Source: Paragordius varius
Lineage: Eukaryota; Animalia; Nematomorpha
Reading direction: 5' to 3'
DNA length: 64,000 nt
Assembly (NCBI GenBank): GCA_964247055.1
Contig: OZ176051.1
Coordinates: forward strand, 11,656,001-11,720,000
The notes under the pieces: model-generated
The model's database searches: none
Seen by the model: only the letters and a program-made list of their open reading frames with translations
What the model was told of the DNA's origin: nothing
Part shown: positions 5,985 to 57,974 of the stretch, piece after piece
Layout: each line of letters begins with the position of its first letter
Numbering within the stretch: position 1 is the first letter of the stretch
Made by a program: the position numbers and the translations under genes

Positions 5985-7320
5985 GAAATCCATATATTAC
6001 AACTAAAATATAAAAAAGGAGATGTACTTCAATGCGAGAATTATCGGAACATATCTCTTATTAGCCACGCTAGTAAGGTCTTACTAAAAGTAATACAAAA
6101 CAGAATGCACAGTATCATACAGACAGAAATACCAGAAAATCAAGCCGGATTTATGAAGGGAAAAAGCACAAGAGATCATATCTCAAACATGAGAAGGATA
6201 ATGGAAACATCAAAAGAGTTCCAGAAAGAATTATACATGTGTTTTATTGATTACAGACAAGCATTCGATTCAATTAACTATGACTCCTTGTGGGAAACAT
6301 TAAAGTTAGTAGGGGTATCGTCTCACTTAATAAGATTGATTAGCTCTCTGTATGCAAAACAAAGAGCGATTATTAGAACACCAGCGGGGGACACAGACGA
6401 AATACCAATCTTGAAAGGAGTCAGACAAGGGTGTTGCTTATCCCCTTATCTGTTCAATATGTGCACAGAAATGATAATGAGGAAGTTGGATGGTAAAAAT
6501 ATTGGAGTAAGAATAGGAGGGAGAACAATCAATAATTTAAGGTTTGCAGACGATACCACTCTTATAGCTGAAAGTGCAAACGATTTGAAGGAATTGATTG
6601 AAGAGATTCGAAAGGAAAGTTTGAGGTATGGTCTTAGGCTTAATCCTAACAAAACCAAAATATTATGTACAGGAAAAAAGCCTACGATTATAATAGAAGG
6701 AGTAGAAATAGAAATAGTTAAACAGTTAACGTTTTTGGGCGCAATAATTTGAGAGGATGGGTCTTTAACTCCTGACATCAGAAAGAGAATAGGATTGGGT
6801 AGAGAAGCGATGACCAAATTAATAAAGATTTGGAAAAACAAAAGCGTAGGAGTTGAAACCAAAAAAAGATTACTCTACTGTTTCGTTCTCCCGGTCACCA
6901 CATATGGATGTGAGAGTTGGAATCTCAGAAAAAAGGACAAAGAAAGGCTCATGGCTTTTGAAAGGAGTTGCTGGCGTAGGATGCTAGGATACACCTGGAA
7001 GGATAAAATTAAGATGAAAATCTAACTACAGAAATAAAACCTAAAACAAACATCATGGAGATAATTCTAAAAAGAAAGTTAACATATTTTGGTCATGTCA
7101 TGCGATCGAATTCTCTGGAGAAAGATACAATGTTTGGGAAGGTAGAAGGGCAAAGGAAACGAGGCCGACCACCGATGAGGTGGTTGGATATGATAAAAGA
7201 AGAGACCAAAATGACACTGAAAGAGCTCAATATAGCGGTTAAAGATAGAAAAAAATGGAAAGAAATAGTTAAAACTATATCCAAAAAGTCGTTTACGACT
7301 TAGGAAAAACCAACCAACCA
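5985..7320 (+). mobile_element. 5'-truncated, inactivated RTE-clade non-LTR retrotransposon (reverse transcriptase)
   Basis: KKGD..C.NYR.ISLISHASK from 6012, QAGF, FIDYRQAFDS, GVRQGCCLSPYLF, RFADD, YGCESW, RKLTYFGHVMR, GRPPMRWLD. In-frame TGA at 6750-6752, 1-bp frameshift near 7012-7020, (AACC)n tail at about 7308-7320. No clear TSD. Confidence 0.93.
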
Positions 7321-14024: not shown

Positions 14025-15551
14025 ACTGAACTCGTATGTCTTCTTAGGTTTTTTAATCAGCTCCAAAACCACGCCATTTTTGTATGGCGTCTCAGTTTTA
14101 AACCGGTAAACCCCTACTTATAGACCTATATGGAAAAGCGCTGAGTTTAATTCTTTGCTTTTATAGGGCAAATATTTGGAATCATCTTTGATACCATCGT
14201 CCCATGGGTTATTCGAAAAAATACCTCAACACTAAATAATTATATGATGGCGTATTTTTAGGGGTAATAAAGGCCCCAAATTAACGACTGATTAAAAAAC
14301 GCCTGACCTTTTTTTATCTAGTTACGGGTTATATTTCAAGCTTTTAATGAACCCATATGGCTTCATAAATTTTCTGTAAATTAGCTTCAAAGCAACGCAA
14401 CTTCTATATAGTGGCGCAGTTTTTCGGGTAGCCCCTTACCCAGGGGCAAGTATAAAAAAGCGTTAAGCAAAATTTTGCCTTTATATGGGGAATACCTGGA
14501 ATTATCATGGATTCCATATGTTCCTTTTAGACACCTAGGTTTTCTGAAATTTGGCTCCAAAAGTCTTATGCGGGTAGCCCCCTAACCAGGGACGAAACAA
14601 AAAAACGCTCGATTAAAATTTTTTCCTTGTTAGGGGTAATATTTTAAACACTTGACCTCATGTGGCCCTTTCTTTAAATTAGTTCCAAAACAACGTAATT
14701 TCTATATAGTGGCGCAGTTTTGGCGGGTAGCTCCCTACCCAGAGGCTGATACAAAAAAAGCGCTTGATTAAAATTTTTTCCTCTTTACGGAGAGTACCTG
14801 GAATCATGATTGATTCCATATGATCTCATAAGTTTGGAAAATTGCCTCAAAATTAAAAAATCCTTCTATGGTGCCGCATTTTTCTGGGCGGGAAGGGCCT
14901 AGTTATCGGCTAATTTTAAAAAACCGCACGATTTTTGCCTTGTTACGGGTAATACTTTAAGCAGTTGTTGAACTCATATGGCTTGATAGGTTTTATGAAA
15001 TTTAGCCCCAAAGGCACGGTATTTCGATATGACGGGTCAGTTTTTAGCGGGTATCTCCTTACTCAGCAGCCCATATAAAAAAAGACTAAAATTGCCTTGT
15101 AACAGGAAATACTTGGGACCCTTATTAAATTTTTACGGTCTTATACTTTGGGTGAAAAATAGATTAAAAAATTATTTTTGTCGACTTTGTTTTTTTGAAA
15201 AAAAGTGGCATTTTACGGGGGGAGCGGGTAAAAAGAGGGTCTAAATTAAAAAAACGAGCCGACTATGTTCGGCGCAATCGAAAATAAGTAAAAAAAATTA
15301 TATTTTAAATCGAATGGTATAACACGTTCTCCAAAAATTGTCTCAAAAGCACGATTTGTGGATTTCTGTTTTCAAAAAACCGTTTTTTACACGGGGTGGC
15401 CCCGAACTGGGGGCCTAATTCAAAAAAGGGCGACGCTATTGTCGGAGCATTCATTAATGATTATATTTCTTCGACATTTGGATTTGAATGGTACCGGTTT
15501 TAGGGAAACAGATCACAAAGCCACCACTTTCCATTTTTATAAATATATAGA
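14025..15551 (-). mobile_element. Non-autonomous Helitron family A, copy with about 7 internal tandem units; 3' end not found
   Basis: 5' end A|TCTATATATTTATAAAAATGG at 15551 (minus strand). Body is the reverse complement of 57975-60130 (e.g. 14161-14199 vs 59960-60000). Internal units recur at roughly 150-170 bp. Confidence 0.8.
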
Positions 15552-15899
15552 TTTATAAAAAAAATTAAAACCAAAAAAAGTCCGTAATGTAAAAATTTAA
15601 TAGCTTTTTGGGAATTTTATTTTAGCATGCTATTCATCGAAAATAATTAACAACCATAAATCTATTTTAAATTTATATATATTTAATTTATATTTTCATA
15701 TTACTTTTAAAACTAAATAAATCCTGTAGGATGCTTGCGCCCTATAATTTTTAAACAAGATTAAATAATGCTACACAAGTTTTCGTTTTTATAATGTCCC
15801 TAATTAATAAATTTAATATGTTATGAACCACAATAATATCGCCTTAAGTTGAAAAATATTGGACACATTTTTGTATACTCGCTACATAAATCAAATGAA

Positions 15900-19111: not shown

Positions 19112-21473
19112 TAAATGGTCTTATCAATGAATCTTTTTTTCTTACAATGTTTAATCTATTAAAGTAATAAGGCTAAAATATATACGGTTATATCCTGGAT
19201 AAAGTGTTAAAAAAATTACAGCAAGGCACTCAAATCATGTAAAAAGGTTTATTTTCGGATAACTGGTCAGTTTAATAATAATCATCAGACTATTGACAAA
19301 ATTATCTATTCAAATAGCTCGTGGTTTTAACTGTAAACATGTGTATAATTTCAATATAATTAAAAATGACAATCATATCAGTTTTTAATTTTATGTTATC
19401 TGTAAGTTCTATAGACTTTTATTATTATCCCGCCATAACCCTCCGAAATATACTTTGTTTTCTTAAAAGAGACGGAATAATTTACATGGTTTTCCTTTTC
19501 AATTATTAATTATATATTAGCTTTATTATACTAAGAATTAAGCGTAGTTGAATTGTATTCACCCATAAAAACTTTACAATAACGTGTTTAGGAATGAAAA
19601 TGATAAAAAAACTAGGCAATTTTGAGTATTGGCATCTAATGGTTCTAACCCCTTCACTATTCTACGTATTCATCAATAGATAAAAAGATATTAAAATGTT
19701 GATGTGACATTTACTTTTAACTATTTATGCTGCTTCGATTGGTTTATGATTTTTGTTCATGCAAAATTACATTAATTGCTTTAAACAGGACACACCCTAA
19801 TGTGAACGAACTATATATATATATATATTGTGTGACTTCAAAACATATAAAAAACGCTATCGATTAAAATGAACTCTAACAAAACGGCAAAATATTGAAC
19901 TTAACTAGTAATATCAATGACCTTTAAAAAATATTAATATTCAACTTTTTTTATTTAAATTATTTATACCATTTTATGACTATGAAGCATTTAATCTTAT
20001 TGATCGTAATCATAGGAATCGTTCAGGGTAGCTTATAATTTTTTATAGAAATGCATTAATTAATTTGGTATATTAATCTGTGCATAAATATTAGTTGCGG
20101 TGTTTTTTTAAGAAAAACCTCTTTATCGCAACTTTGCCAAATTTTAAATATAATTTTTTAAAAAGTTATATATTAGTAAACTGTTAAGCAGCTTTGATGG
20201 TGGCTGGTTGTCTTACTTTTTTTTTAATTTTATTTTGAGTTTGGGTATAAATTTTATAAAGATTTTAACTTTATCACACATTAAGCATTATTTGTGTTAA
20301 AACCAAATTTTGTTACAGTCGATCATAGTCTTTCAAAATCTGAAATTAATATCAAGGCCTAAGCGCCAAGTAAGAAAATTAATTGGAAAAACCTAAAAAT
20401 AACGGTCACCTATTTTAATACTTTGGTAACAATTTTTTTACTAACGATTAAATTTACCATATATTTGTATGAAATTAAAAGAAAACAGTTGAGATAGCTT
20501 CAAAAATAAAATATCGGTAAAAATCATCCGGATAAAATTATGTTTTCGGATTTTATTTTGAATCAATTTTTTGTCAAATTAACTATAATACGACGCAAAA
20601 ACATGGTGAATTTATGAAGAGAATGGTAGTATTGGTTTTGAAAACATCCACAGATGTTTTCTTACACTCAATGCATTAATTTAAAAGCTGAATAATATTT
20701 ACGCTGTAATTAAAATTAACGAGTTTTTAGAATTAAAACTAAATATGAGATCCTATCGGAATCTTGCCATTTTTAATAAGTCCCAACATCTTTACAAATA
20801 TTATTTGAAATTTTAATTGATATTCATTATAATTGTAAAATATTTATATGGCCCAATGTAAATATTTAATGATATCCATAATAATGTTTGCCGATTTAAA
20901 CTTTGATAAATTATTAAGATTATTCCATTGTATTTACACCAAATTTGTACTTAAAATCTTTTGATGGTATAAATAACACTGTTATTAAATTTACATTAAT
21001 CTTGCTAAGATGATTTACATATTATAATTTAATAAAACAACAAAAACGGTTTTAGAACGATTTTTAATTTGAATATTTTAGAAATTGATTTTAAATTTTA
21101 GGCCAAATTTAATATATATTCTCTAGTGGTCCATGTTTATTTTATTGTGATAAATTGTTATTTAAACTTTTTGCCGCCATTTTTCATTATTTCGTAAACT
21201 CAACAGGCAAACAAATCTATTAATATAGTAGTTATAAAATCAACAATAGATTTAAAGCACGATTAAAATGATGTCGTAGAAATAAAATTTAAGTTTAACT
21301 AACAATATACTAAATGAGAAATGAAACTAAAAAAAATTGTTTGTGAATTTGATTTCTTTTTCCTGTTTATAATTTTGTGTTCCTTGTTAATATAAAAACA
21401 TTTTTCAATCGTCTTTGTTCATCTGTATCAACAACTTCGGCCTCCCGTTAACTTTATGTTTGCAGTTATAGGC

Positions 21474-24400
21474 ATGGTGTGTCAAAGCACTATCATTTGT
21501 TTTTTTCTTATTATCTGTTGGCTTTTTTTATATTCGAACATCCAATGCTCTGTCAAAATTTGTACTATGTACACAATTTATTTACATATTGATAATATTA
21601 ATCTTATGGTTTGAATATGTAAATGATCAACTTTTTTTACATGCAATTCAAAAGTAAATTTGATATATATTGACTATAATGTCAGGAGATTGATTCAATC
21701 TGATTTTGGATTCTAAATAACTATAAATATCATACGTTTGCCAAATTAATTCTTATATTGTCATTCACGTATGGAATCCTTAAATTCTAATATAAATATA
21801 AGCATTTTATAAAGGATAAATTGTTAATTAATTAATTATTTTTTGTCAAAAACAATCAATTACACGCAGTAAAACTGCTTTAAACAAAATCATCTATAAA
21901 AAATGGAAAAATAAGGGAGTGTTCATTAAAAAAAAATAAAACAGCTGTTATTTATTTTTAGTTTTTTGCAATTATTTTTCTTATGTGGCGCTTAAGCCTA
22001 AGATATTTTTCTGCTGAATACCCATCATTACTTAAAAAACAAGGCTCATGCAACTTATAAAACGTCCCCAAATTTGATACCAAATATTATATATATATAT
22101 ATTTATTTACTATGTCCGTTGAAAAAATTAAATAATATGTAGATATTTTATTATAATATTGATTTACAGATTAAGACAGTAGAAGATTATTTTTAACGGT
22201 CAAAAATTTAACACAAATATATAATTTTTAAAATTTTATAGCCTTCCAGAATGCCCAAAACAGCCTAAATGAATTGGACATTGACAATAAAGCTTTACGT
22301 AATTATAATTATATTTTTCACAACAGCTATAACTAAGTATTAGGACTTATATTAATAAATAATTAAAATAAGATACATACAAATTATTTTTGATATTTGT
22401 ATTTTTTTAAACAATAATCCTATTGAATCGTTTTGATTTTTAAGATTTATAATTTTTTTAATAGTCGTTTTGTCAATAATATTTTACCATAATCAAATTC
22501 CAAATTTTAAGCCCAATGTGTTTGCATATATACCGTTTACAATTCTATTCACCCTTGAAAAATTTAAATTCACCCTGGAACAATTTAAATACACCCACCC
22601 TTAAACAATTCGTTTACCCTTTAATTATGTTTTTTGTGGCTAATACAACTCATCATTAATATGACATATATCTTTATGGCATAGTTTATATTTTTTTCAT
22701 TTATTATTTTAATTTTGAAGGAAATTTCATTAAAAATATAAAAATATATAAGTAATTTTTTAATCTTAAAAAACACATAATTTATTTTAGGGTGAATTGT
22801 TAATTTGAATTATAAATGGTACATAAACTTTTTCATTTATATCAGTCGATATTTTGACAATCCTTTAACCCATACATGGCAGACTATATATCGTTGACAC
22901 CTTAAATTACGCTTAAACATTTCAAATTCACCTTCAGATTTTAAAATTATTGTGTTTGGGTTAATCTAACTTATTTTTAATACGAAATATTTTTTATCAC
23001 ATAATTTATCATTTTTCTGTATTCTTTCAATATTAAACATAGTTTAGAAAAAGGTATAGGTTATTTTTATCTAAAACATAATTAATTTGGCATATTGGAA
23101 TGTTAAGAGGGAATATAAATTTTGAATTTGAAGTGTACAAGAAATTTTGGATAAATATGGTAATCTTACGTATACCAAATATATATAAATGGGCGCATTA
23201 CCATTTTATCCGTCTGTATATTAATATAAAATAAGTAAGTTGTAACTGTAACATAACAAGCTCATTTGAAAACGCAAAATTTTGAAATTAATCATCTATA
23301 TATTTATAAAAATGGAAAATGCTGGCTTTGTGATCTGGTACCGCAAAACCAGTAGATCCATTCAAATCCAAACATCGAAAAAATATAATCATTAATGAAT
23401 GCCCCGACAATAGCTTCGCCCTTTTTTGAAATAGGCCCCCAGTTCGGGCCCACCCCGTGTGAAAAACGGGTTTTTTTTAAAACACAAGTCCACAAAAATC
23501 GTGTCTTTGAGACAATTTTCTGGAGAACGTGTTGGTCCATTCTATTTCAAATATGATTTTTGTTAAATTTTTAATCGCGCTGAACATAGTCGACTCACTT
23601 TTTTGATTTAGGCCCTCTTTTTACCCGCTCCCCCCGTAAAATGCCATTTTTTTTAAACAACAAAGTCCACAAAAATAATTTTTTAAATCTATTTTTCGCC
23701 CTAGGAATGAGACTGTAAAAATTCAATATGGATTCCACGTATTCCCTGTTAAAAGGCAAAAATTTTAATCAGGCGTTTCTTTAATGATAGCTGCTGGGTA
23801 AGGAGCTACCCGCTAAAAACTGATTCCTCATGTAACTTTGTGATCTGTTTCCGGAAAACCGGTGAACATCATCACATCCAAATATCGAAAAAATATAATC
23901 ATTAATGAATGTCCCGACAATAGCTTCGCACTTTTTTTGGAATTAGGTCCCCAGTTCGGGCCTACCCCGTGTGAAAAATGGGTTAAGTCAATTTTTTGGA
24001 GAACGTGTTGGACCATTCAATTCCAAATTTGATTTTTGTTTACTTATTTTTAATCGCGCTGAACATAGTCGACTCACCTTTTTGATTTAGGCCCTCTTTT
24101 TACCCGCTACCCCCGTAAAATGCCATTTTTTTCAAAAAAAAACAAAGTCCACAAATATAATTTTTTAAATCTATTTTTTCCCCAAGTAACAATATATTAG
24201 TATGAATGCACCGTTTTAAAATTCCTATATAATCATATTTAAATAATGTTTCGAAATAATCCACATATGTGGATCATTTTATTGTCCCTTATTTCAAATA
24301 GCTCCACCCCCCAGAAGTCCGCACGAGATTTACGCTAGTAAAATAATAATAATTCAAACTTCTTTTATTAGTTATGAATTTTAAAAATGTAATTTGGTAG

Positions 24401-27400
24401 CAATTATCACTTTGATGCGAACTTACTTAATACCCAAAATGAACTTATGCCCAGATACAGGGCAAAACAAGATACCAAAATTATAAAGAATGCAAGACCC
24501 GTTCTTAATCAATATTTTGAAATGTATATAGCAGCTACACATCTAATTTAATAGAAAGTTTATTTTAATTAAACAAATATTATCGATCATATATCACGTA
24601 AAACATAAAAAACATTTAAAGTGTCTAGTCGTTATTTATACCCAAAATATGCAGTATATTGGATTAAACAACTCTTTTAAAACATATATGCTTTTAGGCC
24701 CCATATTTGCGATTTACTTATTTAGGCATTAACATGATAACTTGGAATATGTCTTAAGATTTGATACAACCTGCTGTTTATAATCTTTAATTCCAATTTT
24801 GTGATATTGATAAAAAATGTGTAAATGACGATATATTTTGCCATTTATTAGGATCTCCATCAAAAATAAATTTATTGTTATAGAATAAAAATTATTGGAA
24901 TAGACTGCAAAAATTATATAATTTGTTTAATATTTTATTTGATGATAGTTACCCAAGCGAGTATATTGTTTTATAAATAATTTCATTTAATATATATTAT
25001 AAATTGAATAAAAGTTTGATTAGATATTGATTGTTATTAAACCGTATAAATATTTGGCATAGTTGAAAACTTCACCGCTAAACTGGATCCACGTATATAA
25101 CTTAATTTATATGAAAAAATTTAGAACATAGTCGGCCCTACTTATTTATCTTCCAAATTTTACCGCAAAGTTATTTCTTTTTTTATTTTTTTGTATATTT
25201 TGATGCCAAAAAAATATGGATTGTATCAGATTAAGGCAAATGTTTAGCGATCTAATATCATTTATAAACCAAGGATAAGTCCTTAGTTTCCCATTTTTAA
25301 TATCTTATTTAAATTGTGTTTGTGCACAAGATCGATTATTAAACAATTGCTAACTATTGACGGCGAAGAACTTATAGAGCTTCAATAGATTCCATAAAAC
25401 CATATTACTTTAAAAAGTTTAAATTCATTGCTGTTATTTTACATTGTGAGAAAAAATAACTAATTTTCGAAAATTCGTATCCTACAGATTGTTTTTATAC
25501 CAAATTTCTATGTTAATAATAGATCAAAGTGAAAAGCCCGAATACAGAATCATATATAAACCAGCAGTGGTGAATAATAGTGATACAAATTCATCCATAA
25601 CAAACGCTAACATTCAATCCATGAGTCTTAATTATAAAACGCTCGTTAAATGTATTTTATTTAAAACCAATAAAATTTAATTAAATAATAATTTAGCTTT
25701 GGGCGTTGCCGGTACATTATTATTATTAATACTATTTATAAAAGACACTGACTTACTTTAGGACGTTAAAATATGTGAAAAATCATTTGCAGATGTTTTA
25801 TAAGGTATAGAGCTAGCTATGTAATATTGAAAAAACGCAACTATAGTTAATTTTTTTGCCTCTTATTAAAAATTTGGAAATTTGTTTGAAAAAAGACCAA
25901 CCAATGTGTTAGACTTTAAATAAAAGCTAATATATAATTGTAATTGTTAATATTAATATGTGCCATTTAGGACTTCTATCAATATTTTTAATGAGTGTAA
26001 AATTATCAAAAATAAATTTTAATCAAATTATGCTAGATGTTACATCAAACTCAAACCCCCTTATTTTGCTGGTTAACTCTATTCGTATTCGCTAAAATAC
26101 AATTGTTCCAAATAAACATATAATCAAATAATTTTCATAATTTGACCCACTAAATTATAATATTCAATTTATTTCAAACATTAGCTCAAATATTTAACGA
26201 TTAATGAGTATTTGCCCTCTATGGTATTGCGTGGTGCCTTATTTTGTTGATCCTATTTAATTTAAATGAATCTATCTATTTTTTGAAATTTATTTCAAAA
26301 ATTTTCTTATTTTATTGGCTGAAATTTAGGAGCCGCGGCCACTTTTGGTATATTACGTCAAAATTTATATTTTAGCATCCCTTGGTAATTATTACTACTC
26401 TCTCTGTACAATGATATTTCATTCTACAGTATTTGATTAAATAAAGAATATTACGTATAATAAAAAAAACAAGATACCCTATATTTTAATAAATGGAACA
26501 AGTCTGTTCACAATTTCATTTATATAGGGATTTTAAGCCAAGCATCAGGCGTTGCAACCGGTGCAGAAATATCCCAAGCCAGTAGACAAGTCATAAATTT
26601 GGTTGAAAATCTGGCTCCGCATTCACACGGTAAAAGATACTTTCATTTTTAAGCAAAGTAAAGGTTTTAAAATTTTCACCGGAAAATTATAGATTTTATT
26701 ATTTGATACTTTTTTCACAATATTAATGGAATAGAAAACATAATACTACTATTATTACATATAGATGCAATGGCAGAGACATCATTTAACTCCCCAGATT
26801 CAGGTTTTTTCACATAAAATACTAAATAATCTATTCTCTTATGCACTTTATTATTTATAGTAATTTAATATAAGCATGCAAGATGGTTTTGAACCCATTA
26901 AAAATATTGAATTAAATTCCAAATATTTTTTTTAAAGACCAATCAATCTTTGTTATAAAGATATAATTTGATGCAGTGCAATGAGCTTACAAAAACACAA
27001 GATATTGCTTTCAGAATTCTCATGCTTTTGTTTTTGATTATTCAGAGTTGAATACTGAATATCATTATATTTCCCGTTTAAACAAATTAGCTTTATTAAG
27101 TCGCAATGAAACGAAAATTCAAAATAATGTCAAGTTATAGTAAAAAAATGAAACTGCATAATAATATGGCTTTATTTAGCCAAATAGCGTATTTCAGGTT
27201 CAATCATGTTCAAAACGGGTGAAAACACCTTATTTTAGATAAACCCTAATTCTTCTAATTCGATGCACGCCACGCAAAATTTGCTGCTACAAATTGAATT
27301 AAAGAATCGCTCCCTTATAAATTTATTGAAACTCTTTTGAAAGGATGAACTATTTTTTTTACCAAAATTTTGAGCTGTAAAAAAACCGACCATTGTAAAC

Positions 27401-27710
27401 GGATTTATTAACAATTTTACGATTTTGCTGAAATTTAAGGGCAAAGTATGCTTTTTATAGATAATTGTTTACTGGCATATATTTCATATCGCACGATCTC
27501 GGTGTATGTGTTTATTTTAAAAACATTAGCCTATTTTTAACGGGTTAAACTTTCAAAAATCATAAATTACATTGATTTGGTTTAAATTTTATAAATACAT
27601 TTATAATTGGTTAGCTTTTGGCTCTACCAAATATATATAATTTCCTTTGCTTTAGGGATAAAGTGAAAAGATATTTTTTTATAATTCGTAAAATCTAAAA
27701 TTAAAAAAAA

Positions 27711-27750
<40 letters not shown>

Positions 27751-30700
27751 TAAAGTTTTTATATATAATTTGTAGTATATTTTTGTATGCACTTTTTATA
27801 TTAATTACCATCATAGAGTCAAATCCTAGTAATATGGGTAATTAACTTGCACATTTACATATTTTAACCAATGTCCTAACACGTACTGTTTCATAATACC
27901 TGGTCTAAACAAACTTTTTTTACACTTGGATACAATACATTCATTTTAGTCCTTCGATTCTAATTCCGGTCGTTGAATACCCCAGGCCTTTCAAAAAATA
28001 TGGAAATCGAAACTATGGCAAATTTTTGCACTTGTATAACATTAATAAACCAAAACATAAAAAATAATTCCAAAGTATTTGATATTACTAATAAGGTAAA
28101 CTTAAAGGTAAAAATTTTGTCATAAAATAATACAAAATAAACCACTATTTCTGTTTCTATCAATGTTAGATATGGTTTAATTATTGTACCTTTAATTTTT
28201 AATAAATACACACGATATTTTTTAAAATAATGTAAAATAAAAATGGCGTCGAAATAGTTTGATATTAAACTTTCTTTTCAAACTAAATTTTATTTAGATA
28301 TTTCGGCTTAATTATATATTTTTTATTATAGCCCAATTTGAATCAAAGTCTTAAATAACAAAAGCTTAAAAAAATGTTTATGCATTAATATAGACTTAGA
28401 AGACGATGTTTTCGAAGCACCCAATGCTGGCCCTACTGGTTATCATAATAATTTATTAAAAAACCTATTTTATTCGATACACCTTTTCTATTTTTTAGAG
28501 GACAATCCACCGATTCAAGAAGAAATCCCAAGTAAAACAAATTCTAATAGAATCCCAATTACATGGGAACAATTGATATTATATTTTTAAATATTTTAAG
28601 ATGGGGACAATCGTCCTCCTTCGCCAATTAGAGGTTTTACGATATCATAATACTTTACATAGAAGAATCACTTAGGACTTCATCTAGTTCTGGTTCGTTT
28701 TATATGTTATGTTTTTCACTAGCCAGCGTGGAAGGTATGTTTAATATTAAAGTATCCTCAAATTACTTCTAACAATTTTACTGGATTTCTGTTTGCATTC
28801 TTGTTATTTAAAAGCTATTTAACATATTTTTTATGCAACAAAAATGGGCATTTCCCAATAATTTTTTGGTAATAAATTTATGCTTCCAGGTGTACATTTT
28901 ACCGATTTTTTGGTAAAAATATGTAAATTGAAAGGATATCAAATATTTTTATACAAAATGTTTTACATCGGTTTCTACAAAGTTTGCCCATCTCTCAGGT
29001 AGTTCATGAATGCCGTGCCAGAAAAATTGATTGACTTTTGCAGTAAACCATTTGTCAAACCATCTTCCACCGAAAATATAAAAATACCGCTCTTGGTGCC
29101 CCAATGCGAAATTCTTCAGATGGCGCCAGTCAGGAGAGTTCAGCGGATCCAGAAAATTCTCTCTCCGATGCGATTTGGTGTTTTTAGCTGATTTTCCTGC
29201 GTGAGCCGATGTAATGTTATATGTCTAATTGGTTGTTATTCTAATGCATGGTTAAGGAATTTGTTAGCGATCGTGTTGGATTAATCATTTCACGGAACTT
29301 TTAACGGCACAATGTCGCTCTGATTCCACAAGAGATCATATTTCTTAAATAGAACGGCTGAAAGCCACGTTTTTTGAATTTCCAAATAAGGCCATTTTTC
29401 ACCTGTCCCCATTCGATGCATAAATGATTCTGTTAGTGACGTTGAACAAGATTTTACAAGTCACTTTGCGATTTTTATTTGGCGTTTAATCAATTGTTTT
29501 GGACCAATTCGGATTTATTGTATCCCATTGTTCGTAGACATCTATTCGTAATACGTATAATACTTGTGTTGTTGTTAAGTTTGAATTGGGTCATCATACA
29601 GTAATTGCACTTAAATGATTTAACAGTCGTGTGATTGGCTAGAGGGTCCACATTCTTTCACAAGAAATCACAACTTTTATTATTTCCGAAATCATCTTTC
29701 ACATGTGATAATTGATAGAGAATGTCAGCCATGTGTTTTAAAAACGATAATTTTTGAAAGCCTTTTTCTTCCTATGGCAATGCGCATCGCAAAGGTTTAT
29801 TTCAAGCACCTAATTCGACATGATGACTATATGATTATGATAATTGGACGTTGGTTTAAACTCAACTGATATGTGTATGTTGCTTAACAAAATGGGGTAC
29901 GCAAATTAGTCGTCTGTGTATTTGACGTATTCTAAAAGCCTGTATGAATTTATTAATACACTCATAATTTTTGCGAAAATTGCTTTACGGCCTTTCATGT
30001 TTTGACCCAATATGCGATTTATTCATATTAAATTAAACCAAATATATTTCAATCTGAAAGATGGCTTCATCAGCAAAGTAGCTCTAAAAAATTTGTATTT
30101 TCACAGTTTTCGGTATAAGTAAAACCCACTAGACCCCAATACATAATTATAAAAATAAATTATTTTGTTTTGCTGAAATTTATTTTTGAATACCATTGTA
30201 GCTATAACCTTTAATTTCCTTAATCAACCTAATATATTTAGCACCTAATGCAATGAGTCCAGCAGCAATAGGTTTATTCATAATAAAATTTTTATGAGAT
30301 CCATTAATTATTTAATTCATTTTTTGTTACACACAATATATCTCTACTAAATTCATAATATATAATATTTTAATTTATATATATAATTTTATCTTAGCTC
30401 GATTTGAATTACATTATGCAAGTATATAATCTTTATACCTTAAAAATATAATATTAAACACACTTTTTTAGTATTTCGGCAATTACGAGCGGGTAATATT
30501 ATCATTAACCAATATATATATATATATATATATAGCCATAATCAATTTGCGATATAGTAAGAAATTTTTCATAAATTTAAAAATACTAAAGCTGCTGGAA
30601 TCCTGAGTCAAGGTTGATCATGTCTATCTAATTAATATCCTTTTTAGATGCCAATTCGTTTGCCGGAGGTCACAAAATATATTTTCTATAATTTAAAATG

Positions 30701-33700
30701 TGTCATCGCGTAAATGATTTATAAGAGGCTAATATATAAATAAATATATCCGGGAGCAGTACTCGGTGAATCGCATTGAATTTCATTATATTTATGGATA
30801 GGGCGGAAGCTTATGCTTTACTTAAAGTAACTTGCTGTTAATTTATATTATTAAAACCCGATTGTGAAATCTTTGTAGTACATAAATTTTTTCGAATTCA
30901 AGAGTTTGTATCAATATATCTGTAAACTATTTTGCATTAGGCCACAAAATAGAACCCAAAATCGTTAGGGAAATTTTTTTTAATCGTACGAAATTAGAGT
31001 ATGTGATCTAAAAATATTGGTCGGAAAAAAAAGAACCGGGTTGCTTTTGAAAAATGGTGTTGGAATCGGTTGTTAATGTCTATTATTATTTTAAATAACA
31101 TCCAACTCATTATTTATTATTCTTTGCGGAGGTAAAGTTCCATTGATGAAACAACATAATAACTTCATAAATGCCAAAATATCATTGGTGAAAAAAAGGC
31201 CAAATCAAAATATATATAAAATATTTTTTACAATTTTTTGTTATTTTAACATTTCGATGAAATAACGAATTAAAATCCTACATAATTTATATATATACAG
31301 GAAATTTTGATGGCAAAATATAACCTTTAATAACGTGCGAAATTGTTTTTCTGAGGTCACCGAAACTGGATTGATTTTTAAAACACTAATGAGGCAATCA
31401 AAGCAGTTTTTAAAATTTATAAAATCCGGCTTGGTAGCAGAGTTAGAACCAGATTTATATAAAAAACAAATTTTTTCCCACTAATAGAGTTTTTGAGTGT
31501 CCCTATTTTTTTACTATTTCATGAAAATTAAATTTATTAATCTAGTTATGCAAATGTTGGATCATCGTAATTATTATAATGCTAATATTGTTCACAATTA
31601 TTAACATAAATATTGTATGACACTTGTTTTATATATGGGCTAAAGTTACCCTGACCAACGGTATATCTTTGCTTAATTTCCATTAACTACCAAATTGCCA
31701 TTTTTTTTATTTTTTCTTTATAAAAATTATAGAAGGCGGTTACGTTCAACTGATACAAAGTATCATTATTGCTAATTCTAAAATATCGAATCCAAAAATT
31801 TAGGATTAAGAGACATTGGTATTATTTAACCTCTAATCTTTAAAGGATATTTTCAACACATTGATAGTTATGTGCGAAGTATAATTTAATGATGATAAAT
31901 AAATACTAAAATATAGCTTTGGCTAGCACACAAACACGTATAAAATTTATTTAATTACAATTTTGATAAATAAATAGGACATATCAAAATTAATATTTAT
32001 TAATATAATTTTAATTACTATGTTTAATAAATTTTTGTGTTCACATAGGTTTGGAAACCTTTTTTGATAGTATGTCTACATAAATATTAAATTCATTTAA
32101 ATTATAGATTTACTATTAGTTTTTGCTGTTTAACATTTGTTATTACAAATAGTAACACTATTTTATAACCCAAGTCAAAATGCAGAATCGTAATCGGATT
32201 AGATCTCAAAATCGTTAAAATAAAACAAGGTTTTATAATTTAAAGGTATTTCTATGGGAAAAATGGAACTGGAACCGAGTTAGTTCTAAAAATATCAAGT
32301 GATCACTAGTTGTAGAGGGGTTTACTTTTGTTTTTCTAATTCTGAAACGAACATAAACTATTGCAATGTGCACAAAAATAAAACAAATGATCAACATTCT
32401 CATCAAAAACATATAATTAGTGTGTGCTAAGGGCGAGTCAATTATAAAAATAAAACTTTGATATCGATGTGAAATATCAAAAAACACTAACCTGCAATAT
32501 GTGATAAAAAATTAGGTTGGTCGCTTTTTGCCTTTGTGTAGAAAGACGATGCTGAACAAAAAATATAAATAAAATTTTGACGGAGATCGGTATAAATTTG
32601 GGTAGTTGTAAGAAAGTTATTTTACTTTCATAGAAATTCAAATTTGATCAAAGTTAAAATGTTGAAGTTGAACATTTTTTCCTTTTGTCTATTTAATTAT
32701 GTACTAATTTATTGCATAAGCACGCATGTGCGTACTGTATACATATTATAAAAAAATTTAAGCAAAACAATATATATATCGTTTAATTATTTTTATGTGT
32801 GACCCAATAACACATGGATCCCGCAAATTTTCCTTTTCTTAAAATAAACATAAAGGCCGAATAAATTAATATTTAAATATTTACATTCAGAAATACAGTA
32901 AAAATTATACGGACAAACTGTAAAAATATAAACACAAATTTTTTTTAAAAAATAACCATACTTTTTAAGCCTTGATTTATCCTATAAATAACATTTCTTT
33001 ACACTCGTAAAATACATATTGTATTACTAATTTACTTTTTCTATATTATACTTTGTAGTTAAAAACAATGAGTTATATTTAATTAAGATTAAAAAGATAT
33101 GGTTGTTTTGAAAAAATTATTTTTCTATTTTCACGTTTTGTCCGTATAATTTTAATTTTTACTTTAATTAAAGCCGATTAAATTATGTAATATTTGTCAA
33201 ATGTATTATTGAATTAAAATATAAAACAATTAATTATCTTTTATATAAGTCCCAAAATGATCGTTCGCCTTCTTATGTGAGTAGATTCATTAAAAAAAAT
33301 TGTTATATTTGACATCATTTTAAGGCACCAAATATTAATAAAAGAGGCGAATAAAATTAAAAATATAAACTATTTTCAAAAAATGATAGATGCCGTATAC
33401 TAATTAATTCTTTATGCTTAGATCTCGCCATATTTCCATATGGTGCAAATACATAACATAAGTCCGTATATAAATATAATTACTCGTAAGGCTCAAAACT
33501 AATGCTAAACTGATACGTTTTTATCAAAATATATCCGAATATTTTTATTGTTTCCTCTGATTAATGCACTTAATCTACAAGAACATAATGTATATGTATT
33601 AATTCTTTCATCGAAATAAATTTTTTATGGTATTTGCGCATAAGGGCTGTATTGTAAAAAGCTTTATGTAACAGACATATGTTGTGGGCTGTCCAAACTC

Positions 33701-34481
33701 AAATTTATCAAAATTTACACTTCTATCCTTTTTCAAATAATTTAATTTAGTATTGCAACAAAGAATTTTGGGTAAATATGTTCACAATTATTCTATAATT
33801 CTATAGAGGATACAGGTCATTTATTGGGTAAAATAAGTATATATAATATTTGTATTAGCTGCTCCAAGCCAAGTTATCGGTAAATTTATAAAAAATAAAT
33901 TCATAATTTTTTAGATACTGTCGAACATGTGACAGGTTGGATTGCGATATTTGTTTCATTTATATTGCCATAAATAAATATATAACACCTTTATTGTGTA
34001 ACATTAGATGCGATTGAGCTAGATGAAGGTAGACTTAATATATTAATTTAAAACCCAAAAAAAGCTTTAACATTTTTACCATCGTTATTTAATATACTGG
34101 AGCATTAAATAATTTTAAAATATCGTCTTCGGGCCAAACTACATAAAAATGTTTCGACATAAACTCTAAATCGATAATATTCATTTGCAAAAATGTCAAA
34201 TTAATTGTTTAATCTTCTAATTTTTCAGAAGACCAAAATAGTTTATGTTGTAGGGTGAAAGTTTTAGGCTTTCATTTACAGAATTTAAACTTATTGGACA
34301 TGTTTAAGAAATTTACGATAATAATGATAAAATTAATCCGTATTTATTTTGTCATATTTAGCTATTGATGTGATTTGTAAGATGAGCTTTATAAAAATAT
34401 TTAAAAAATATATTTATATAGTCTCTCACATGGCAAGTTTATTCATTTTTTAATTTTTTTCAACCTTTAGCCGAAGAATAA
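21474..34481 (+). CDS. Putative secreted micro-exon gene (MEG-like), about 28 symmetric phase-1 exons, product unknown
   Basis: Signal-peptide exon 21474-21561 (MVCQSTIICFFLIICWLFLYSNIQCSVKI). Then AG..GT-bounded, stop-free phase 1-1 exons, each a multiple of 3: 22242-22298, 25063-25092, 25523-25651, 26528-26629, 26765-26803, 27817-27837, 28394-28438, 28499-28531, 28601-28633, 28663-28692, 28723-28734, 30242-30271, 30472-30492, 30592-30612, 30648-30668, 31546-31566, 31733-31759, 31804-31818, 31917-31937, 32049-32069, 33807-33815, 33859-33879, 33915-33935, 34008-34028, 34229-34240, 34362-34376; terminal 34471-34481. Most are GC-rich islands ending G|GT, and none overlaps a recognised transposon. 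Individual micro-exons and both gene ends are less certain than the overall architecture. Confidence 0.7.
22531..22821 (+). mobile_element. Tc1/mariner-type MITE with repeated subterminal aattcaccct motifs
   Basis: TIRs tacc(g/a)tttaca...t(a/g)taaatggta; colinear with 46555-46818. Confidence 0.7.
23295..24338 (+). mobile_element. Non-autonomous Helitron family A, both termini intact, with an internal tandem duplication
   Basis: A|TCTATATATTTATAAAAATGG at 23295 and ...gcacgagatttacgCTAG|T at 24338 (A-T insertion, no TSD). About 23830-24190 duplicates about 23325-23700. 16-bp palindrome atccacatatgtggat near 24270. Confidence 0.88.
27713..27749. repeat. (TA)n microsatellite
   Basis: Uninterrupted AT dinucleotide run; others at about 30510-30533 and 45328-45353. 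Confidence 0.9.
27923..28350 (-). mobile_element. piggyBac-like TTAA MITE, internally deleted copy
   Basis: Begins cacttggatacaatacattcattttagtccttcgattc; ends cccaatttgaatcaaagtc|TTAA (28351-28354); colinear with 60620-61165. Confidence 0.75.
28886..29900 (-). mobile_element. Decayed mariner (Mos1-like) transposon
   Basis: Terminal CCAGGTGTACA (28886-28896) equals the start of the Mos1 TIR. Minus-strand fragments: ATGTCGAA start at 29821, FMHRMGTGEKW (FLHRIVTGDEKW), SPD-APS, RWFDKWFTAKVNQFFWHGIHELPERWANFVETDVKHFV* ending about 28949. Many frameshifts; the far end is approximate. Confidence 0.85.
32901..33153. mobile_element. Short MITE-like inverted repeat with about 80-bp arms
   Basis: aaaattatacggacaaa...aaccatactttttaa (32901-32968) mirrored by ttaaaaagatatggtt...tttgtccgtataatttt (about 33089-33153). 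Confidence 0.6.
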
Positions 34482-35944
34482 TAAAACAGCGTCATTATAA
34501 ATAATCATATAAATAAATATATTCTTTTTTAATTATCATAATAAATTATATTAATATTCTATCCATATAAAATGGTAAATCTGACTAGCTTCTATAACGT
34601 TCTGCATGCAGTGTCTAATACGCTCTTAAGATATTATATGCAGCCCACAAAAAATTTGGTCAATAAATCCATGATTTGTAATTAATTACAAATGAAATTA
34701 AGAATATTAGGTAATTTTATCGTCCGAATAAGTTAAAAAAATTTGGTAATAGAAAAAAATATAAATATACATTAAATGCTTATTTTTTAGAGATTTTTAA
34801 TCTATTAGCATATTTATCAATGCCCTTGAAGTTTCGATTTTTTTAATTAAAAAAGCGGCTCTCTTTGAATAAAAAACCCTTCTCTAAAACTTAAAAACTA
34901 TAAACAAAAGATATTGTTAAATATTTGGAATGATTTAATTAAAATAAACTATAAAATTTTATTTAAACTTTGATTTAAAAAACACAATTCGTAGCAATCC
35001 CTAAAAAAGTACAGTTTTTCTCAAAATAATTTAACCGCATATTCATGATGTGATTTATTAAAGCTTTACCTATAAGACCTGTTTTAATTCTGCTATATCT
35101 GGTTATAATATAATTTGCTTAAATAAAACAATTTTTTCCTCCAAATCAGGGGTATTCAACACACGAACACACTGAGGACTGCAGTCAAAAAAATATAACG
35201 TATGGATAGCATAATATTTATTATATTACAACTACCATATAACTGAAAAATTACGACCGCTATATATCTATTGGTTTATTCGGTTGACAAAATTCGGAAA
35301 TATATATTTATTCGCCTCAATTTCTAAAATCATTTAGGTGTATCTTCGATAAAAAAATTCTAATAATCTTTACAGTTGTCTATAATGAATGATAATTTTG
35401 ACCGTTAAGAACTTAAATCCAATTTGAAGGTTTTTAAATTTTTATCAAACAATCAAGGATCTAAATAAACAAATATATTTGATTCTGAATGAATTAATAT
35501 TAAAATATTATTTATAAAAGTAAATAAATAAATATAACTCATAAAATGTTTATAATTTAAATAATTTTATACAATTAATTTATTTTTATAGTGTGAATAA
35601 TCAGTGTTTTTTTTGTAATATGTGAGATGAAAAATTTTAATTTTATATTTTTCGCTCCAAGCCAGATTCAATTTTATTATGACATGGGATATTTAACCAA
35701 AAAAATATTAATGAAATCATATTCTAGTATATTAACAGAATAATATCAAACCTCATTTTATTTGAGGGTAATTTTGCACAAAGAGATTTAATTTAATTAA
35801 ATAATAATTTTTTAGTTTTAGGAGCATAAAACCATAAATAAAATATTTAAAATACACCCATTTTATATGCCACCTTTTAACCTTTGAATTTAATCGCTTA
35901 TAACATAGTGTCCACAATATAAATATTACCGGCATTTTTGCGTT

Positions 35945-36495: not shown

Positions 36496-37058
36496 CACTT
36501 CGATTAAAATTGGGGTATCTAAATACCCCAAACTAAATTTAAATTTATATTTTTAAAAAAAACTACTGAAGGAATGGTCCCAATTATGCTTCTATTCTAA
36601 TAAAAATTATATAAATAAGCCAAAATAAATCTAAATAAAATTTTGTTTTGAAAAAAAAGTTTCATGTCAAACTACTTCGACGCCATTTTTAATTCACAAA
36701 ATTTTTGTAAAATACGTGTTCATTTTATTTTAAAGCTGTAATTAACGATAATTTTTTATTTAAATAACATCTAGCAGTGATAGAAATAAAAAAATTGGTG
36801 TATTTGTATTATTATTGAATTAGCCGATGCCCACATGTTACGTTAACTAATTTTTTACATCTGGGTTTTACATAAAATAAGTAATATCAAGTATTTTTAA
36901 ATTATTATATTTCGGTTTATTAAAGTTATATAAGTGCAATTTGCCATGGCTTCAATTCCTTCCATATTTAATAAAGAATTTAATTTTAAAGAGGCCTGGG
37001 GTATCCAACTACCCCAAGTTGAATCGAATGACTGAAATGAATGTGTTGCATCCAAGTT
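36496..37058 (+). mobile_element. piggyBac-like TTAA MITE
   Basis: Left end cacttcgattaaaattggggtatctaaatacccca; right end taccccaagttgaatcg...tccaagtt|TTAA (37059-37062). Confidence 0.75.
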
Positions 37059-37432
37059 TTAATAAAAGAATAAAGACATATTGTATTTGGCAAATTATAA
37101 TTATATAATCCTTAGAGGCGTTTGAATTGACGATCTAAAAGTTGACGTATAATATATTGATCTGCTTAAAACTTAAACGCTTACAGCTTTCTAACTTCCG
37201 GAGTCCTAACTTGTGATACCTCCAAGACTTGAATTAAATAAGTCTAAACATAAGAAGCTATGCACAGTTATTGTAAGTTTTATAACACTATTTACTTGTT
37301 GTAATAGACTGCGCGAGATTGGACGGTAACTATATTCTGATAAATTTGTATGTATCCTGATAATCCAGGAATGCTTTTTGACCCTTACGAGATTTAAGAA
37401 AAATTATTAACACTTTTGTGGAACTGCATAAA

Positions 37433-37963
37433 CACTTCAATTCTAAATGGGGTGTCTGAATACCCCAGGCGATTTAAATTGATATTTTTTGAATACTGTT
37501 TAAATTTATGCTTCTATCCTAATAAAAATTATATAAATAAGCCAAAATAATATAAAAAGTTTCGTCTCATACTTGGACACCATTTTTATTTACAACATTT
37601 TTGCAAATATCGTGTTTATTTGATTATAAGCCAAAAATTAAGCTTACTTTGTTATTAAAATCACATTTAACATTAATAAAAACAAAAAAGTGGTATATTT
37701 TGAGCTATTTATGTATTTTACTTATGCACATATGTCATCTTTGCTAACTTTTTACCTTTCGGTTTTACCCTAGAATAAGTAATGTCAAGTATTTTTAAAT
37801 GAATATTTTATTATATTTCGGTTCATTAATGTTACATAAGTGCAAACATTTGCCATGGTTTTAATTTATTCGATATTTTTTTAAAAACATATATTTAAAC
37901 AAGCCTGGGTATCTAACTACCCCAATTTGTATCGAAGGACTGAAATGAATGCGTTTTATCCTG
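37433..37963 (+). mobile_element. piggyBac-like TTAA MITE
   Basis: Left end cacttcaattctaaatggggtgtctgaatacccca; right end taccccaatttgtatcgaaggactgaaatgaatg...tg|TTAA (37964-37967). Confidence 0.75.
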
Positions 37964-39760: not shown

Positions 39761-40830
39761 CACTTTGATTTATGGGGTATCTACATACCCCAGATAATAT
39801 TTAAGCTGGAAATTTTACAAAACTACTGAAAGAAACAATTTGAGCCAAATCTAAAAAGAGTTTGGTTTTGGAAAAAAAATTATTTTCAAACTTCTTGGAC
39901 GCCATTCTTATTTTACTAAATTTTTGAATATCGCGTTTTTAATTCTAACCTTAAAGTTAAATTTACTTTTTTATTAACATCTCATATAAATTAATTAACA
40001 CGATTCAAATTGGGGTATCTAAATACCCCAGACTAAATTTGAGTTAGGATTTTTAAAAAACTACTGAAGGAAACGGTCCCAATTTAAATTTATGCTTCTA
40101 TCCTAATAGAAATTATATAAATATGCCAAAATATTTAAATAATGTTTTGAAAAAAAAGTTTCATGTCAAACTACTTCGACGCCATTTTTATTTCACAAAT
40201 TTTTTTCAAAATATCGTCTTCATTTAATTTTAAGGGTAAAATCAAAGCTAATTTTTTATTTAAATTACATCTAAAATTGATAGAAATAGAAAGAGTCGTT
40301 TATTTTGTATTATTTTTCAATTTTACCATTACACGCAGGTCAGGTTGTCTAAATTTTTACCTTTCAGATTTTGCTCAAAATATGTAACATCAAGGATTTT
40401 AATTTTTATATATGTATTTCGGTATATTAATGTTATATAAGTAAATATTTTGCCATGGTTTCGATTCCTTCCATATATTTTGAATAATTTAATTTTAAAC
40501 AGGCCTGGGGTATTTAACTACCCCAATTTGAATCAAAGGACTAAAATGAATGTGTTGTATCCAAGTGTTAAATTAAACAGGAAAAGTTGTATATATTGCA
40601 TTATTTTTATATTTAGCTAATGCACACATTTCAGGTTGGCTAAATTTTTACCTTTGGATTTTACCTCATAATTAATATCAAGTATTTTTAATTGAATTTT
40701 TCATTTGATTCGCTTCATTAATGTTATATAAGTGCAATGTATAATTTCATTTTTTCCATATTTTTTACTTTAATTTTACTCAAGCCTGAGGTATAAAACT
40801 ACCCAATTTAAATCGAAGAAATGAATGTAC
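39761..40830 (+). mobile_element. Older piggyBac-like MITE interrupted by a younger copy of the same family
   Basis: TTAA (39757-39760)|cactttgatttatggggtatctacatacccca; similarity breaks at TTAA 39995 and resumes after TTAA 40571, running to a decayed right end at about 40785-40830. Confidence 0.7.
39999..40567 (+). mobile_element. piggyBac-like TTAA MITE, full length
   Basis: TTAA at 39995-39998 and 40568-40571; near reverse complement of 60620-61165. Confidence 0.88.
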
Positions 40831-41126: not shown

Positions 41127-41258
41127 TTAATATTAATTGTAGATTTTTTTTATAATCTAAATTGCTATTGTAATATGCATAATATATCCAATAATTATAA
41201 ATAATTATATTATATTTTATAATACATGTAATCACTTTTCTTTGTTTGTTTACATTTG

Positions 41259-42159
41259 ATGGAGCGTGGTATGAAAACAAAATACGGAGGAAAAACATTT
41301 ACCCTTTTTGTTATATTTATTTCTCTGCTGTCACTTTTTATAATAATAAATTATCTAAAAATATCTAAACAAAACTCGAATTGTTTAAATGTTAATGAAG
41401 AACTGTCAGAAAACGCAAAAAATCTGAATCTAAAAATAAATGCATTACAACAAGAAATGGATTATGCTAAGGATTCTGCCAAAATAATTGAAAAGGATTT
41501 AAGTCAATGTTCCGAAACATCTAAAAACTTACGGGAACAACTTGATCGTACAAAATCTGAGAATGAGGATAAAACATCTAATATTTTAAGATTGAATACT
41601 GAATTTCAAAAAACCAAAGAAGAATTAGTTTTTTATATTTTTATGATAGGCTAAAATTAAATCCGATTATGAGGCACTTCAAGAAAGTAATAACATTCTA
41701 AAAGGTATAATTATATAATATTTTAGGTGAAAAACTCCATATTCAGGGCGAATATGACAAAATTTTTAAGGAGTATCAGTCGCTTAAGGAAAAAGAGTAA
41801 AATTTTTAGAAGATATTTTATGTTACTTTGGACTGTTTTTATGGTTTTTCTTTTTTAGATGAAAAAAATTCATATGCTTAGTATATTTTTTTCACACTTT
41901 AATTTATGCAATCACCATTTTTTCAAATAGGAAAATGGTAAGTCAAACTCAACCATCACCAAAGGCTGAACAAATGGTTAATAAGGTTAATGAACAGGTC
42001 GGTGTTCAACCTCCTGTACAAGAAGCCTTGGCCCCTGCAGAACCCAAAAACGTTTTGCCAAATCAATTTGAACCCGAAGATTCTGATGATGCTGTACTTC
42101 AGCAAGGCCATGATGAAAATATCCCTCCTCCTCAAAATCAACAAGATGCTCCAGTTTAA
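41259..42159 (+). CDS. Type II membrane coiled-coil protein with an acidic/Pro/Gln-rich C-terminus (Golgi GOLM1/CASC4/GOLIM4-like architecture), about 240 aa
   Basis: Exons 41259-41627, 41650-41704, 41727-41796, 41931-42159 total 723 nt in one frame. Short basic N-terminus, TM segment TFTLFVIFISLLSLFIIINYL, heptad coiled coil continuing across the splices (AKIKSDYEALQESNNILK, GEYDKIFKEYQSLKEK), tail EPEDSDDAVLQQ. The family call rests on architecture only. Confidence 0.8.
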
Positions 42160-56991: not shown

Positions 56992-57974
56992 TTATTCTGC
57001 TGAAAAATCAATATTCTTTATCAGAAATATGTGGAAAACAAATATATCTTGTAGATATAAAATGAACGTTAACTGTAATTATTAAAAGCAAGTATGCATA
57101 TATACATATAGAAATAATTATATTTAAATCATTTCAAGGTAGAAAGGCTACCGTAAAAAGAATGGCATGAAAAACAAATGTATACATCTTACATAGGTCA
57201 TACCGATATAAATAAAAGAAGACGCCAATAAAATTAGGCTTTTAGTTATCAATATCGAATATTTTTTATGAAGGTAATAGGGTATATTTTTTAAAAACAA
57301 ATTAAAAAATGAAAGGCTTGCACCAATCTATTAGTTACTTTTTTATTTTTACAGTATGTATCTGTATAGCGATGGATATATATTTTGTAGCATTATGTAG
57401 TAAGTTATCAAGCTATTTTAAAACATCCCAAACATACAAATATTGATACTGCTTTTCAATTTTATACTTACATTTGGAAAATGGAGTAGCTCACTAGGCC
57501 AGGCGTAAATTATAACATAAAAGTATAAATCTAAGACTTTAAAAATATACAATTATTTTATGTATCCATAATTTTATGAAATTAAAATATGCCTTTATGG
57601 TCTTTTATTAGTTTAGAAATTTTATTTAAATATAAACTTTACTGATTCTTTATTTTAATATTTAAATATTCTTTGATTTTATGTTAAGAGCTACAAAAAA
57701 CTTGGAACGAAAAGGCATTTACAGCAAAGTTTCGTGAAAGCATCTTTAATTGTATATGGATGCTATCATTAGAATATAGAAAACTTATGTCAGAGGAAAA
57801 ACCTTTTTTCCCGAGAACTACTTTTTTGGAATAAAATACGCGAGCACATATGGTTATCATTGATTTAAAATTCATTTATCACTTCAACACAAATGGCATA
57901 TGTATCTCTATTTACCGATTGGAATGACCAGCTACAAAAAATAATTATTTTGTTATTTTTATATATAATCTTAA

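Follow-up and report, generated by a model that had tools for sequence, protein, structure and literature searches.

Does a 13-kb stretch of hairworm DNA that holds hardly any long open reading frames (ORFs) nevertheless contain a protein-coding gene, divided into exons of only a few codons each? The stretch lies in the 64,000-nucleotide window analyzed here, which is part of contig OZ176051.1 of the Paragordius varius assembly GCA_964247055.1 (Nematomorpha; positions 11,656,001 to 11,720,000 of the forward strand). Coordinates are counted from the first nucleotide (nt) of the window. A first-pass annotation, made from the letters of the DNA, had noted 13 kb without a useful ORF match and had read in it a chain of AG- and GT-bounded islands behind a signal peptide, resembling the micro-exon genes (MEGs) of schistosomes. 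Long ORFs are indeed almost absent from the window, and the GC content is ~26% throughout. This composition is compatible with that of the published genome of the hairworm Gordionus montsenyensis (26.93% GC, 64% repeats), and the window is AT-rich, repeat-rich animal DNA. The islands are present far beyond chance by tests of density, length, frame and consensus, and the chain belongs to genuine exons. They very probably make up a spliced protein-coding gene on the + strand, reaching from ~19976 (or 21474) to ~34485 and encoding a probably secreted product through a signal-peptide-like first exon and a long series of tiny phase-1 exons.

The simplest counter-explanation is that AG..GT pairs meet by chance around GC-richer patches, or that repeat debris imitates exons, and that there is no gene. 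Both dinucleotides are frequent, stop-free segments of 9–21 nt are common in any frame, and repeat copies elsewhere in the window yield similar high-scoring false islands. We listed all AG|x|GT segments in 21.4–34.6 kb and defined strict islands as those of 9–60 nt with an exon GC of ≥0.40 and flanks of ≤0.25. The + strand of this interval holds 50 strict islands, and 27–28 of these combine a symmetric length with an open phase-1 frame. The corresponding number is 4 on the opposite strand and 1–14 in control blocks of 12.9 kb located away from the gene. Dinucleotide shuffling of the interval, repeated 50 times, yields 7.0 ± 2.6 strict phase-1 islands (maximum 13), versus 28 observed. Phase-1 islands of equal contrast are thus rarer in the shuffled sequences and in the control blocks, which is the comparison that had been proposed as a possible refutation of the chain. 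Openness by itself is common among such short segments, as, of the 29 strict islands with a multiple-of-3 length, 20 are likewise stop-free in one alternative frame and 23 in the second.

Islands were also collected without any length or frame rule, by scoring GC contrast and splice-site matrices and retaining non-overlapping segments with a score of ≥6. Between 21.5 and 34.5 kb on the + strand, 20 of the 23 islands obtained in this way are multiples of 3, and one of the three others is a merger of three adjacent exons. Random lengths would give such a proportion with a probability of ~1e-7. Outside the gene on the same strand, the lengths are spread over the three remainders (8:9:11 for remainders 0:1:2), as they are on the whole − strand (14:11:13), where only two islands fall within the interval. 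In a two-fold cross-validation, the matrices were derived from half of the exons and the best AG/GT pair was sought around each held-out exon. The length of the pick is divisible by 3 in all 21 cases, and in 20 the pick coincides with the annotated exon.

Splice consensus and codon periodicity, neither of which was used to pick the exons, give the same picture. The base at acceptor position −3 is T (TAG|) in 19 of 21 exons, compared with a background T frequency of 0.35. Exons close with a G in 15 of 21 cases and carry an A at the penultimate position in 14, as is typical of AG|GT donors, in agreement with the earlier remark that the exons mostly end in G|GT. In the claimed frame, the GC contents at the three codon positions are 0.57, 0.47, and 0.34, and G accounts for 0.37 of the first positions versus 0.13–0.14 of the others, a pattern as expected of coding sequence in an AT-rich genome. 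When each exon is tested by the position-specific composition of the rest (leave-one-out), 20 of the 21 favor the phase-1 frame; with a chance of one-third for each exon, such a result has a probability of ~4e-9. By position, all 23 internal exons begin at codon position 2. The chain ends in frame at a TAA codon (34479–34481), which overlaps an AATAAA signal (34480–34485). Joined end to end, the islands form one reading frame, as the first-pass annotation had described, and this frame closes at a stop. The density, length, cross-validation, frame, and shuffle tests all contradict an origin by chance, the length rule and the frame preferences each being improbable under it, and repeats overlap none of the supported exons. 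The no-gene explanation is therefore hardly credible.

The exons are described below in 5′ to 3′ order; all are on the + strand, the internal ones are phase 1-1, and the scores combine splice sites and GC contrast. The first internal exon, 22242–22298 (57 nt, score 8.7), has the acceptor ttttatag, is open only in the phase-1 frame, and passes the frame test. The two exons that follow have moderate standing. The 30-nt exon 25063–25092 scores only 3.6, though its claimed frame is ahead of the others by 4.7 and 7.3 bits. The 129-nt exon 25523–25651 has a GC of 0.32 and a weak acceptor, with its claimed frame ahead by 13.9 and 11.8 bits, and is joined by a 45-nt intron to the strong 15-nt exon 25697–25711 (score 16.9, GC 0.67, taatttag...gtacat). 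After the 18-nt exon 26330–26347 (score 13.9, GC 0.67) comes the top island of the window, 26528–26629 (102 nt, score 25.1), which is open only in the phase-1 frame, with a lead of 22 and 18 bits, and then 26765–26803 (39 nt, score 14.9).

A compact group occupies the middle of the gene. It comprises 28394–28438 (45 nt, score 17.8), 28499–28531 (33 nt, score 12.5, with a 60-nt intron upstream), 28601–28633 (33 nt, score 14.0), 28663–28692 (30 nt), and 28723–28734 (12 nt, score 12.6, donor GAAG|gtatgt). The fourth of these has the lowest score of the supported set (6.8) and lies between two very short introns (29 and 30 nt). Farther downstream, 30242–30271 (30 nt, score 12.5) is open only in the phase-1 frame, and 30472–30492 (21 nt, score 12.6) is the sole supported exon whose composition fails to favor the claimed frame. 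Two more 21-nt exons, 30592–30612 (score 11.4) and 30648–30668 (score 8.5), are separated by a 35-nt intron. For the 27-nt exon 31733–31759 (score 7.6), a shorter 6-nt alternative scored higher in the cross-validation. It is followed by 31917–31937 (21 nt, score 10.7) and by the smallest exon, 33807–33815 (9 nt, score 8.9), which has an alternative 21-nt form, 33807–33827, with a score of 6.4. The 3′ part consists of three exons of 21 nt, namely 33859–33879 (score 11.2), 33915–33935 (score 13.1, with a 35-nt intron upstream), and 34008–34028 (score 7.0, open only in the phase-1 frame), and of 34422–34436 (15 nt, score 10.4). In the last exon, which has a T-rich acceptor tract, the coding part ends within 34471–34485, with the stop codon and AATAAA mentioned above.

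The exon list changes somewhat from the one proposed at first, which gave 26 internal sizes. Nineteen of these are well supported (57, 102, 39, 45, 33, 33, 30, 12, 30, 21, 21, 21, 27, 21, 9, 21, 21, 21, and 15 nt), as is the terminal piece, and the exons of 30 and 129 nt are supported moderately, by frame periodicity only. The remaining five find no support, since candidates of the right size in the right gaps stay within the background: a 21-nt exon between 26804 and 28393, a fourth 21-nt exon between 30669 and 31732, the 15-nt exon 31804–31818, a 21-nt exon before 33807, and a 12-nt exon between 34029 and 34421. About a fifth of the listed exons are thus doubtful, in keeping with the caveat attached to the list that some might be false. 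Conversely, two of the strongest islands, 25697–25711 and 26330–26347, had been omitted from it. Two other candidates were rejected. The 45-nt segment 25125–25169 passes the splice-score threshold, but its composition favors other frames. The 18-nt island 27180–27197 (+ strand, score 10.3) has good splice-like flanks and contains an in-frame TAG, which marks it as a false positive or else as a poison exon.

The introns range from 29 nt to ~2.8 kb. Starting from the candidate first exon 19976–20027, their lengths are 2214, 2764, 430, 45, 618, 180, 135, 1590, 60, 69, 29, and 30 nt, and after exon 28723–28734 they are 1507, 200, 99, 35, 1064, 157, 1869, 43, 35, 72, 393, and 34 nt. Two of the short introns, 28439–28498 (60 nt) and 28693–28722 (30 nt), have lengths divisible by 3 and lack in-frame stops, which would make their retention frame-neutral; this may well be a matter of chance.

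The long introns carry dispersed repeats. Two tandem units of ~500 nt with GC-rich cores lie at 23279–24312, and copies of this repeat are found at 15029–15552, 57955–58475, and 61645–62170. These copies generate false exon-like islands in the scans. A second family of ~420–470 nt is represented by 27910–28328, with copies at 36598–37066, 37520–37961, 40104–40829, and 60606–61057; the copy within the gene stops 66 nt upstream of exon 28394. A further dispersed repeat, 22561–22712, is also placed between exons. All three elements are intronic, and the earlier observation that transposons fall only between the exons is borne out. Strong islands at 36.8–40.6 kb gave the impression of a second micro-exon gene downstream. 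They sit within copies of the 27910–28328 repeat, and the candidate was rejected.

The 5′ end of the gene offers two candidates. The first exon proposed originally is the doubtful segment 21474–21561 (88 nt, + strand), which has an ATG, a hydrophobic stretch, and a phase-1 end. Its donor, AAATTT|gtacta, scores −3.7, at the 37th percentile of all GT sites, and is no better than a random GT. About 1.5 kb upstream, 19976–20027 (52 nt, + strand) also begins with an ATG and ends in phase 1. It encodes a short, Lys-containing n-region and an 11-residue core of Leu, Ile, and Val, followed by Val-Gln and a split codon (hydropathy 3.8), and its donor is at the 93rd percentile of all GT sites. Spliced to 22242, it would give Val-Gln-Ala|Phe, a cleavage-type site of the classic −3/−1 form. 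The exon whose signal peptide was called clear at first is thus hydrophobic, but its donor is random-grade, and the upstream segment fits better. We consider 19976–20027 the better signal-peptide exon, though its membership in the gene is that of a candidate: the gene may begin with it, always or as one of two options, or it may be an orphan start that belongs to a different gene. Around the downstream candidate, 21472–21561 forms an open, symmetric phase-1 segment of 90 nt with a weak acceptor (−2.9), and the acceptor-like sites tttgcag and ttatag (21456–21476, + strand) directly precede the ATG at 21474. These may reflect an intron in the 5′ untranslated region, or 21472–21561 may be an internal phase-1 exon.

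The product predicted from the supported exons has 224–236 residues, or 277 with both moderate exons. After the signal peptide, it is acidic, with an isoelectric point of about 4 (4.05–4.09) and 32 Asp and Glu residues versus 7–8 Lys and Arg residues. Ala, Ser, Glu, Asp, and Pro are abundant in the mature part, and cysteine is absent from it. Dibasic sites are absent from the predicted product, and all three of its N-glycosylation sequons are encoded by the 30- and 129-nt exons. Strong hydrophobicity is confined to the signal peptide. A Pfam scan of the two largest exons gave no match. A phmmer search with the 33-residue peptide of the 102-nt exon against 1.84 billion representatives, a collection apparently without this species, also gave none; a query of this length is blind to distant relatives, so that the result excludes near-identical sequences only. 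Of two regularities suspected within the product, one was rejected and the other is weak. A local alignment between the region of the 102-nt exon and the 3′ run of 21-nt exons, which might have indicated an internal duplication, is matched by 140 of 500 shuffles, and the mean helical hydrophobic moment expected of an amphipathic heptad per 21-nt exon is only ~1.7 standard deviations above shuffles. Most likely, the product is secreted, soluble, and for the most part unstructured, and a single constitutive isoform predominates.

These features also bear on another explanation, that the chain is only part of some larger or different gene, or a decaying copy of one, with the true start elsewhere or with a membrane-associated product. 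The presence of two competing first exons, neither of them proven, is compatible with it, as is the long region 22298–25697, where the moderate segments 25063–25092 and 25523–25651 are the only exon candidates. A Gly/Ala-rich hydrophobic stretch could be taken for a membrane segment, but its Kyte-Doolittle mean over 19 residues, 1.38, does not reach the value commonly required of transmembrane segments (~1.6). Moreover, the frame stays intact through >20 junctions up to a stop that is fused to AATAAA, and the island scan finds no other dense exon chain in the window that could extend the gene. We therefore regard a fragmentary or membrane-associated gene as very unlikely.

In the model that we prefer, a complete gene would be transcribed on the + strand between about 20 and 34.5 kb, and the transcript would lose ~24 GT-AG introns, each of them in phase 1. 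The first exon would supply the signal peptide and end in phase 1. It would be followed by 21–23 internal exons of 9–129 nt, 18 of them ≤36 nt, each with a length divisible by 3 and a start at codon position 2, and a tiny last exon would provide the stop codon and the poly(A) signal. Translation would yield an acidic, largely unstructured protein with a signal peptide, which would enter the secretory pathway. Constitutive splicing is taken as the default assumption. The internal exons are all frame-neutral, so that the frame would survive the loss of any one of them.

Several points weigh against this model. The splice matrices were trained on exons of the gene itself, which makes the absolute scores partly circular; the length, strand, frame, and periodicity tests are free of this circularity, and the conclusions rest mainly on them. 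Single exons of 9–21 nt are individually unprovable, and one to three false or missing exons are expected from the background rate of the window. The first exon is ambiguous and may be 19976–20027, 21474–21561, or both as alternatives, and the signal peptide was judged by hydropathy and the −3/−1 rules. The predicted gene is derived from genomic sequence.

The layout of the gene has two known parallels. In schistosome MEGs, a signal peptide comes first and most of the coding sequence is divided among tiny symmetrical exons of 3–81 nt, from which differential splicing produces pools of variants, and such genes have been reported as restricted to flatworms (PMC4350168; 10.1101/2023.06.21.545858). 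The present gene resembles them in its putative signal-peptide exon and in its internal exons, which are all multiples of 3 (23 of 23) and mostly tiny (9–36 nt in 18 of 23). Exons of ≤36 nt carry ~48–55% of the coding length, a range that reflects the inclusion or omission of the 30- and 129-nt exons. Other shared features are the mixture of short and kilobase introns, the intronic position of the repeats, a small product without a known domain in the two largest exons, and the failure of standard gene finders to detect such genes. It differs from the schistosome genes in having two exons of >100 nt, in having only about half of its coding length in exons of ≤36 nt, and in showing no sequence similarity in the searches made (phmmer with the 33-residue peptide, Pfam on the two largest exons). 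A hydrophobic or aromatic motif of the MEG type after the signal peptide is not seen in the predicted product. In schistosomes, differential splicing and gland expression define the variation system, whereas the present gene is described at the level of DNA.

Aphid bicycle genes, reportedly the subject of Korgaonkar et al. 2021, are the second parallel. They have a signal peptide, a mean of ~17 exons, mostly tiny and nearly all starting at codon position 2, and CYC (Cys-Tyr-Cys) motifs, and were recovered by a structure-based classifier (Stern and Han 2022; PMC9168663). The likeness lies in the putative signal peptide, the many tiny internal exons (~25 here versus a mean of ~17), the orphan-like nature, and the discovery by gene structure only. 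Because an exon start at codon position 2 is equivalent to intron phase 1, the two designs agree, and small internal exons starting at this position are found here in 23 of 23 cases by position and in 20 of 21 by composition. The paired CYC motifs of the bicycle proteins have no counterpart in the mature product, which is devoid of cysteine. In addition, bicycle genes belong to a hemipteran insect lineage and are marked by strong salivary-gland expression and by secretion of their products into the host. The MEG-like design recognized at first, in which a signal-peptide-like exon precedes an unbroken series of symmetric phase-1 exons that mostly measure 9–36 nt, accordingly matches both systems (PMC4350168; PMC9168663).

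Symmetric class 1-1 exons are also known from exon-shuffled extracellular proteins, where each exon encodes a folded module such as EGF or Ig. In the present gene, the two largest exons have no Pfam match, and the remaining exons (3–15 residues) are too small to encode a domain each. Judged by gene structure, the gene shares the layout of MEGs and bicycle genes and appears to be a member of neither family. A convergent origin is plausible, because no homology was seen in a search that covered one exon of 33 residues. In the literature searched, we found no paper that connects micro-exon genes with Nematomorpha.

How far the likeness to MEGs extends to function is another matter. The gene could be a variation system, in which combinatorial exon skipping would produce a pool of secreted variants at the host-parasite interface. 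Any subset of the 21–23 internal exons could be skipped in frame, as all are phase-1 symmetric, and the same design underlies the isoform variety of schistosome MEGs (PMC4350168). Hairworms are parasites, the GC content (~26%) and repeat richness of the window are like those of the published hairworm genome, and the two short introns that are in frame and stop-free would fit flexible splicing. However, the argument proceeds from exon symmetry, and symmetric phase-1 exons are also the rule in bicycle genes, for which gene-family expansion and rapid evolution, not skipping, have been stressed (PMC9168663). Duplicated or mutually exclusive exon sets were not seen either: internal similarity is not significant, and no exon repeats were detected in the window. 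On balance, a skipping-based variation system seems rather unlikely for this gene, and a single constitutive product is the preferred reading.

If transcripts confirm the gene, Nematomorpha would be the third unrelated group, after blood flukes and aphids, with signal-peptide proteins encoded by long chains of tiny phase-1 exons. This would strengthen the view that the micro-exon design has evolved repeatedly for secreted, fast-changing proteins of parasites, and would provide hairworm biology with candidate secreted molecules that ordinary annotation skips. A bolder proposal is that the gene belongs to a micro-exon class of the hairworm lineage, independent of flukes and aphids, which uses frame-neutral skipping to diversify secreted proteins acting on the arthropod host. 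We consider this proposal unlikely at present; if true, parasites would have arrived at the micro-exon layout repeatedly, in at least three lineages. ORF-based and standard gene finders are blind to these 13–15 kb, and catalogues of secreted proteins from such genomes are therefore probably incomplete. A structure-based classifier of the kind used for bicycle genes (PMC9168663) could recover such genes.

Rfam and tRNA scans of the window gave no match, and non-coding RNA was rejected as the source of the GC islands. Within the large intron after exon 28723–28734, a block at 28900–30000 is GC-richer (0.36) and single-copy in the window, with short ORFs on the − strand; these ORFs have no significant Pfam match, and the impression of a decayed mariner-type transposase is unconfirmed. 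Downstream, a gene at 41256–42159 (+ strand) encodes a membrane anchor at the N-terminus and a coiled coil, and an acidic ORF rich in Pro and Gln comes next. No Pfam family was identified for this gene, and a protein search with the ORF 41256–41651 gave no homologue. Upstream, 6105–7303 (+ strand) is a remnant of an RTE-type long interspersed nuclear element with a reverse-transcriptase ORF (Pfam RVT_1, 1.7e-33), whose top relatives in the protein database are only 51–55% identical.

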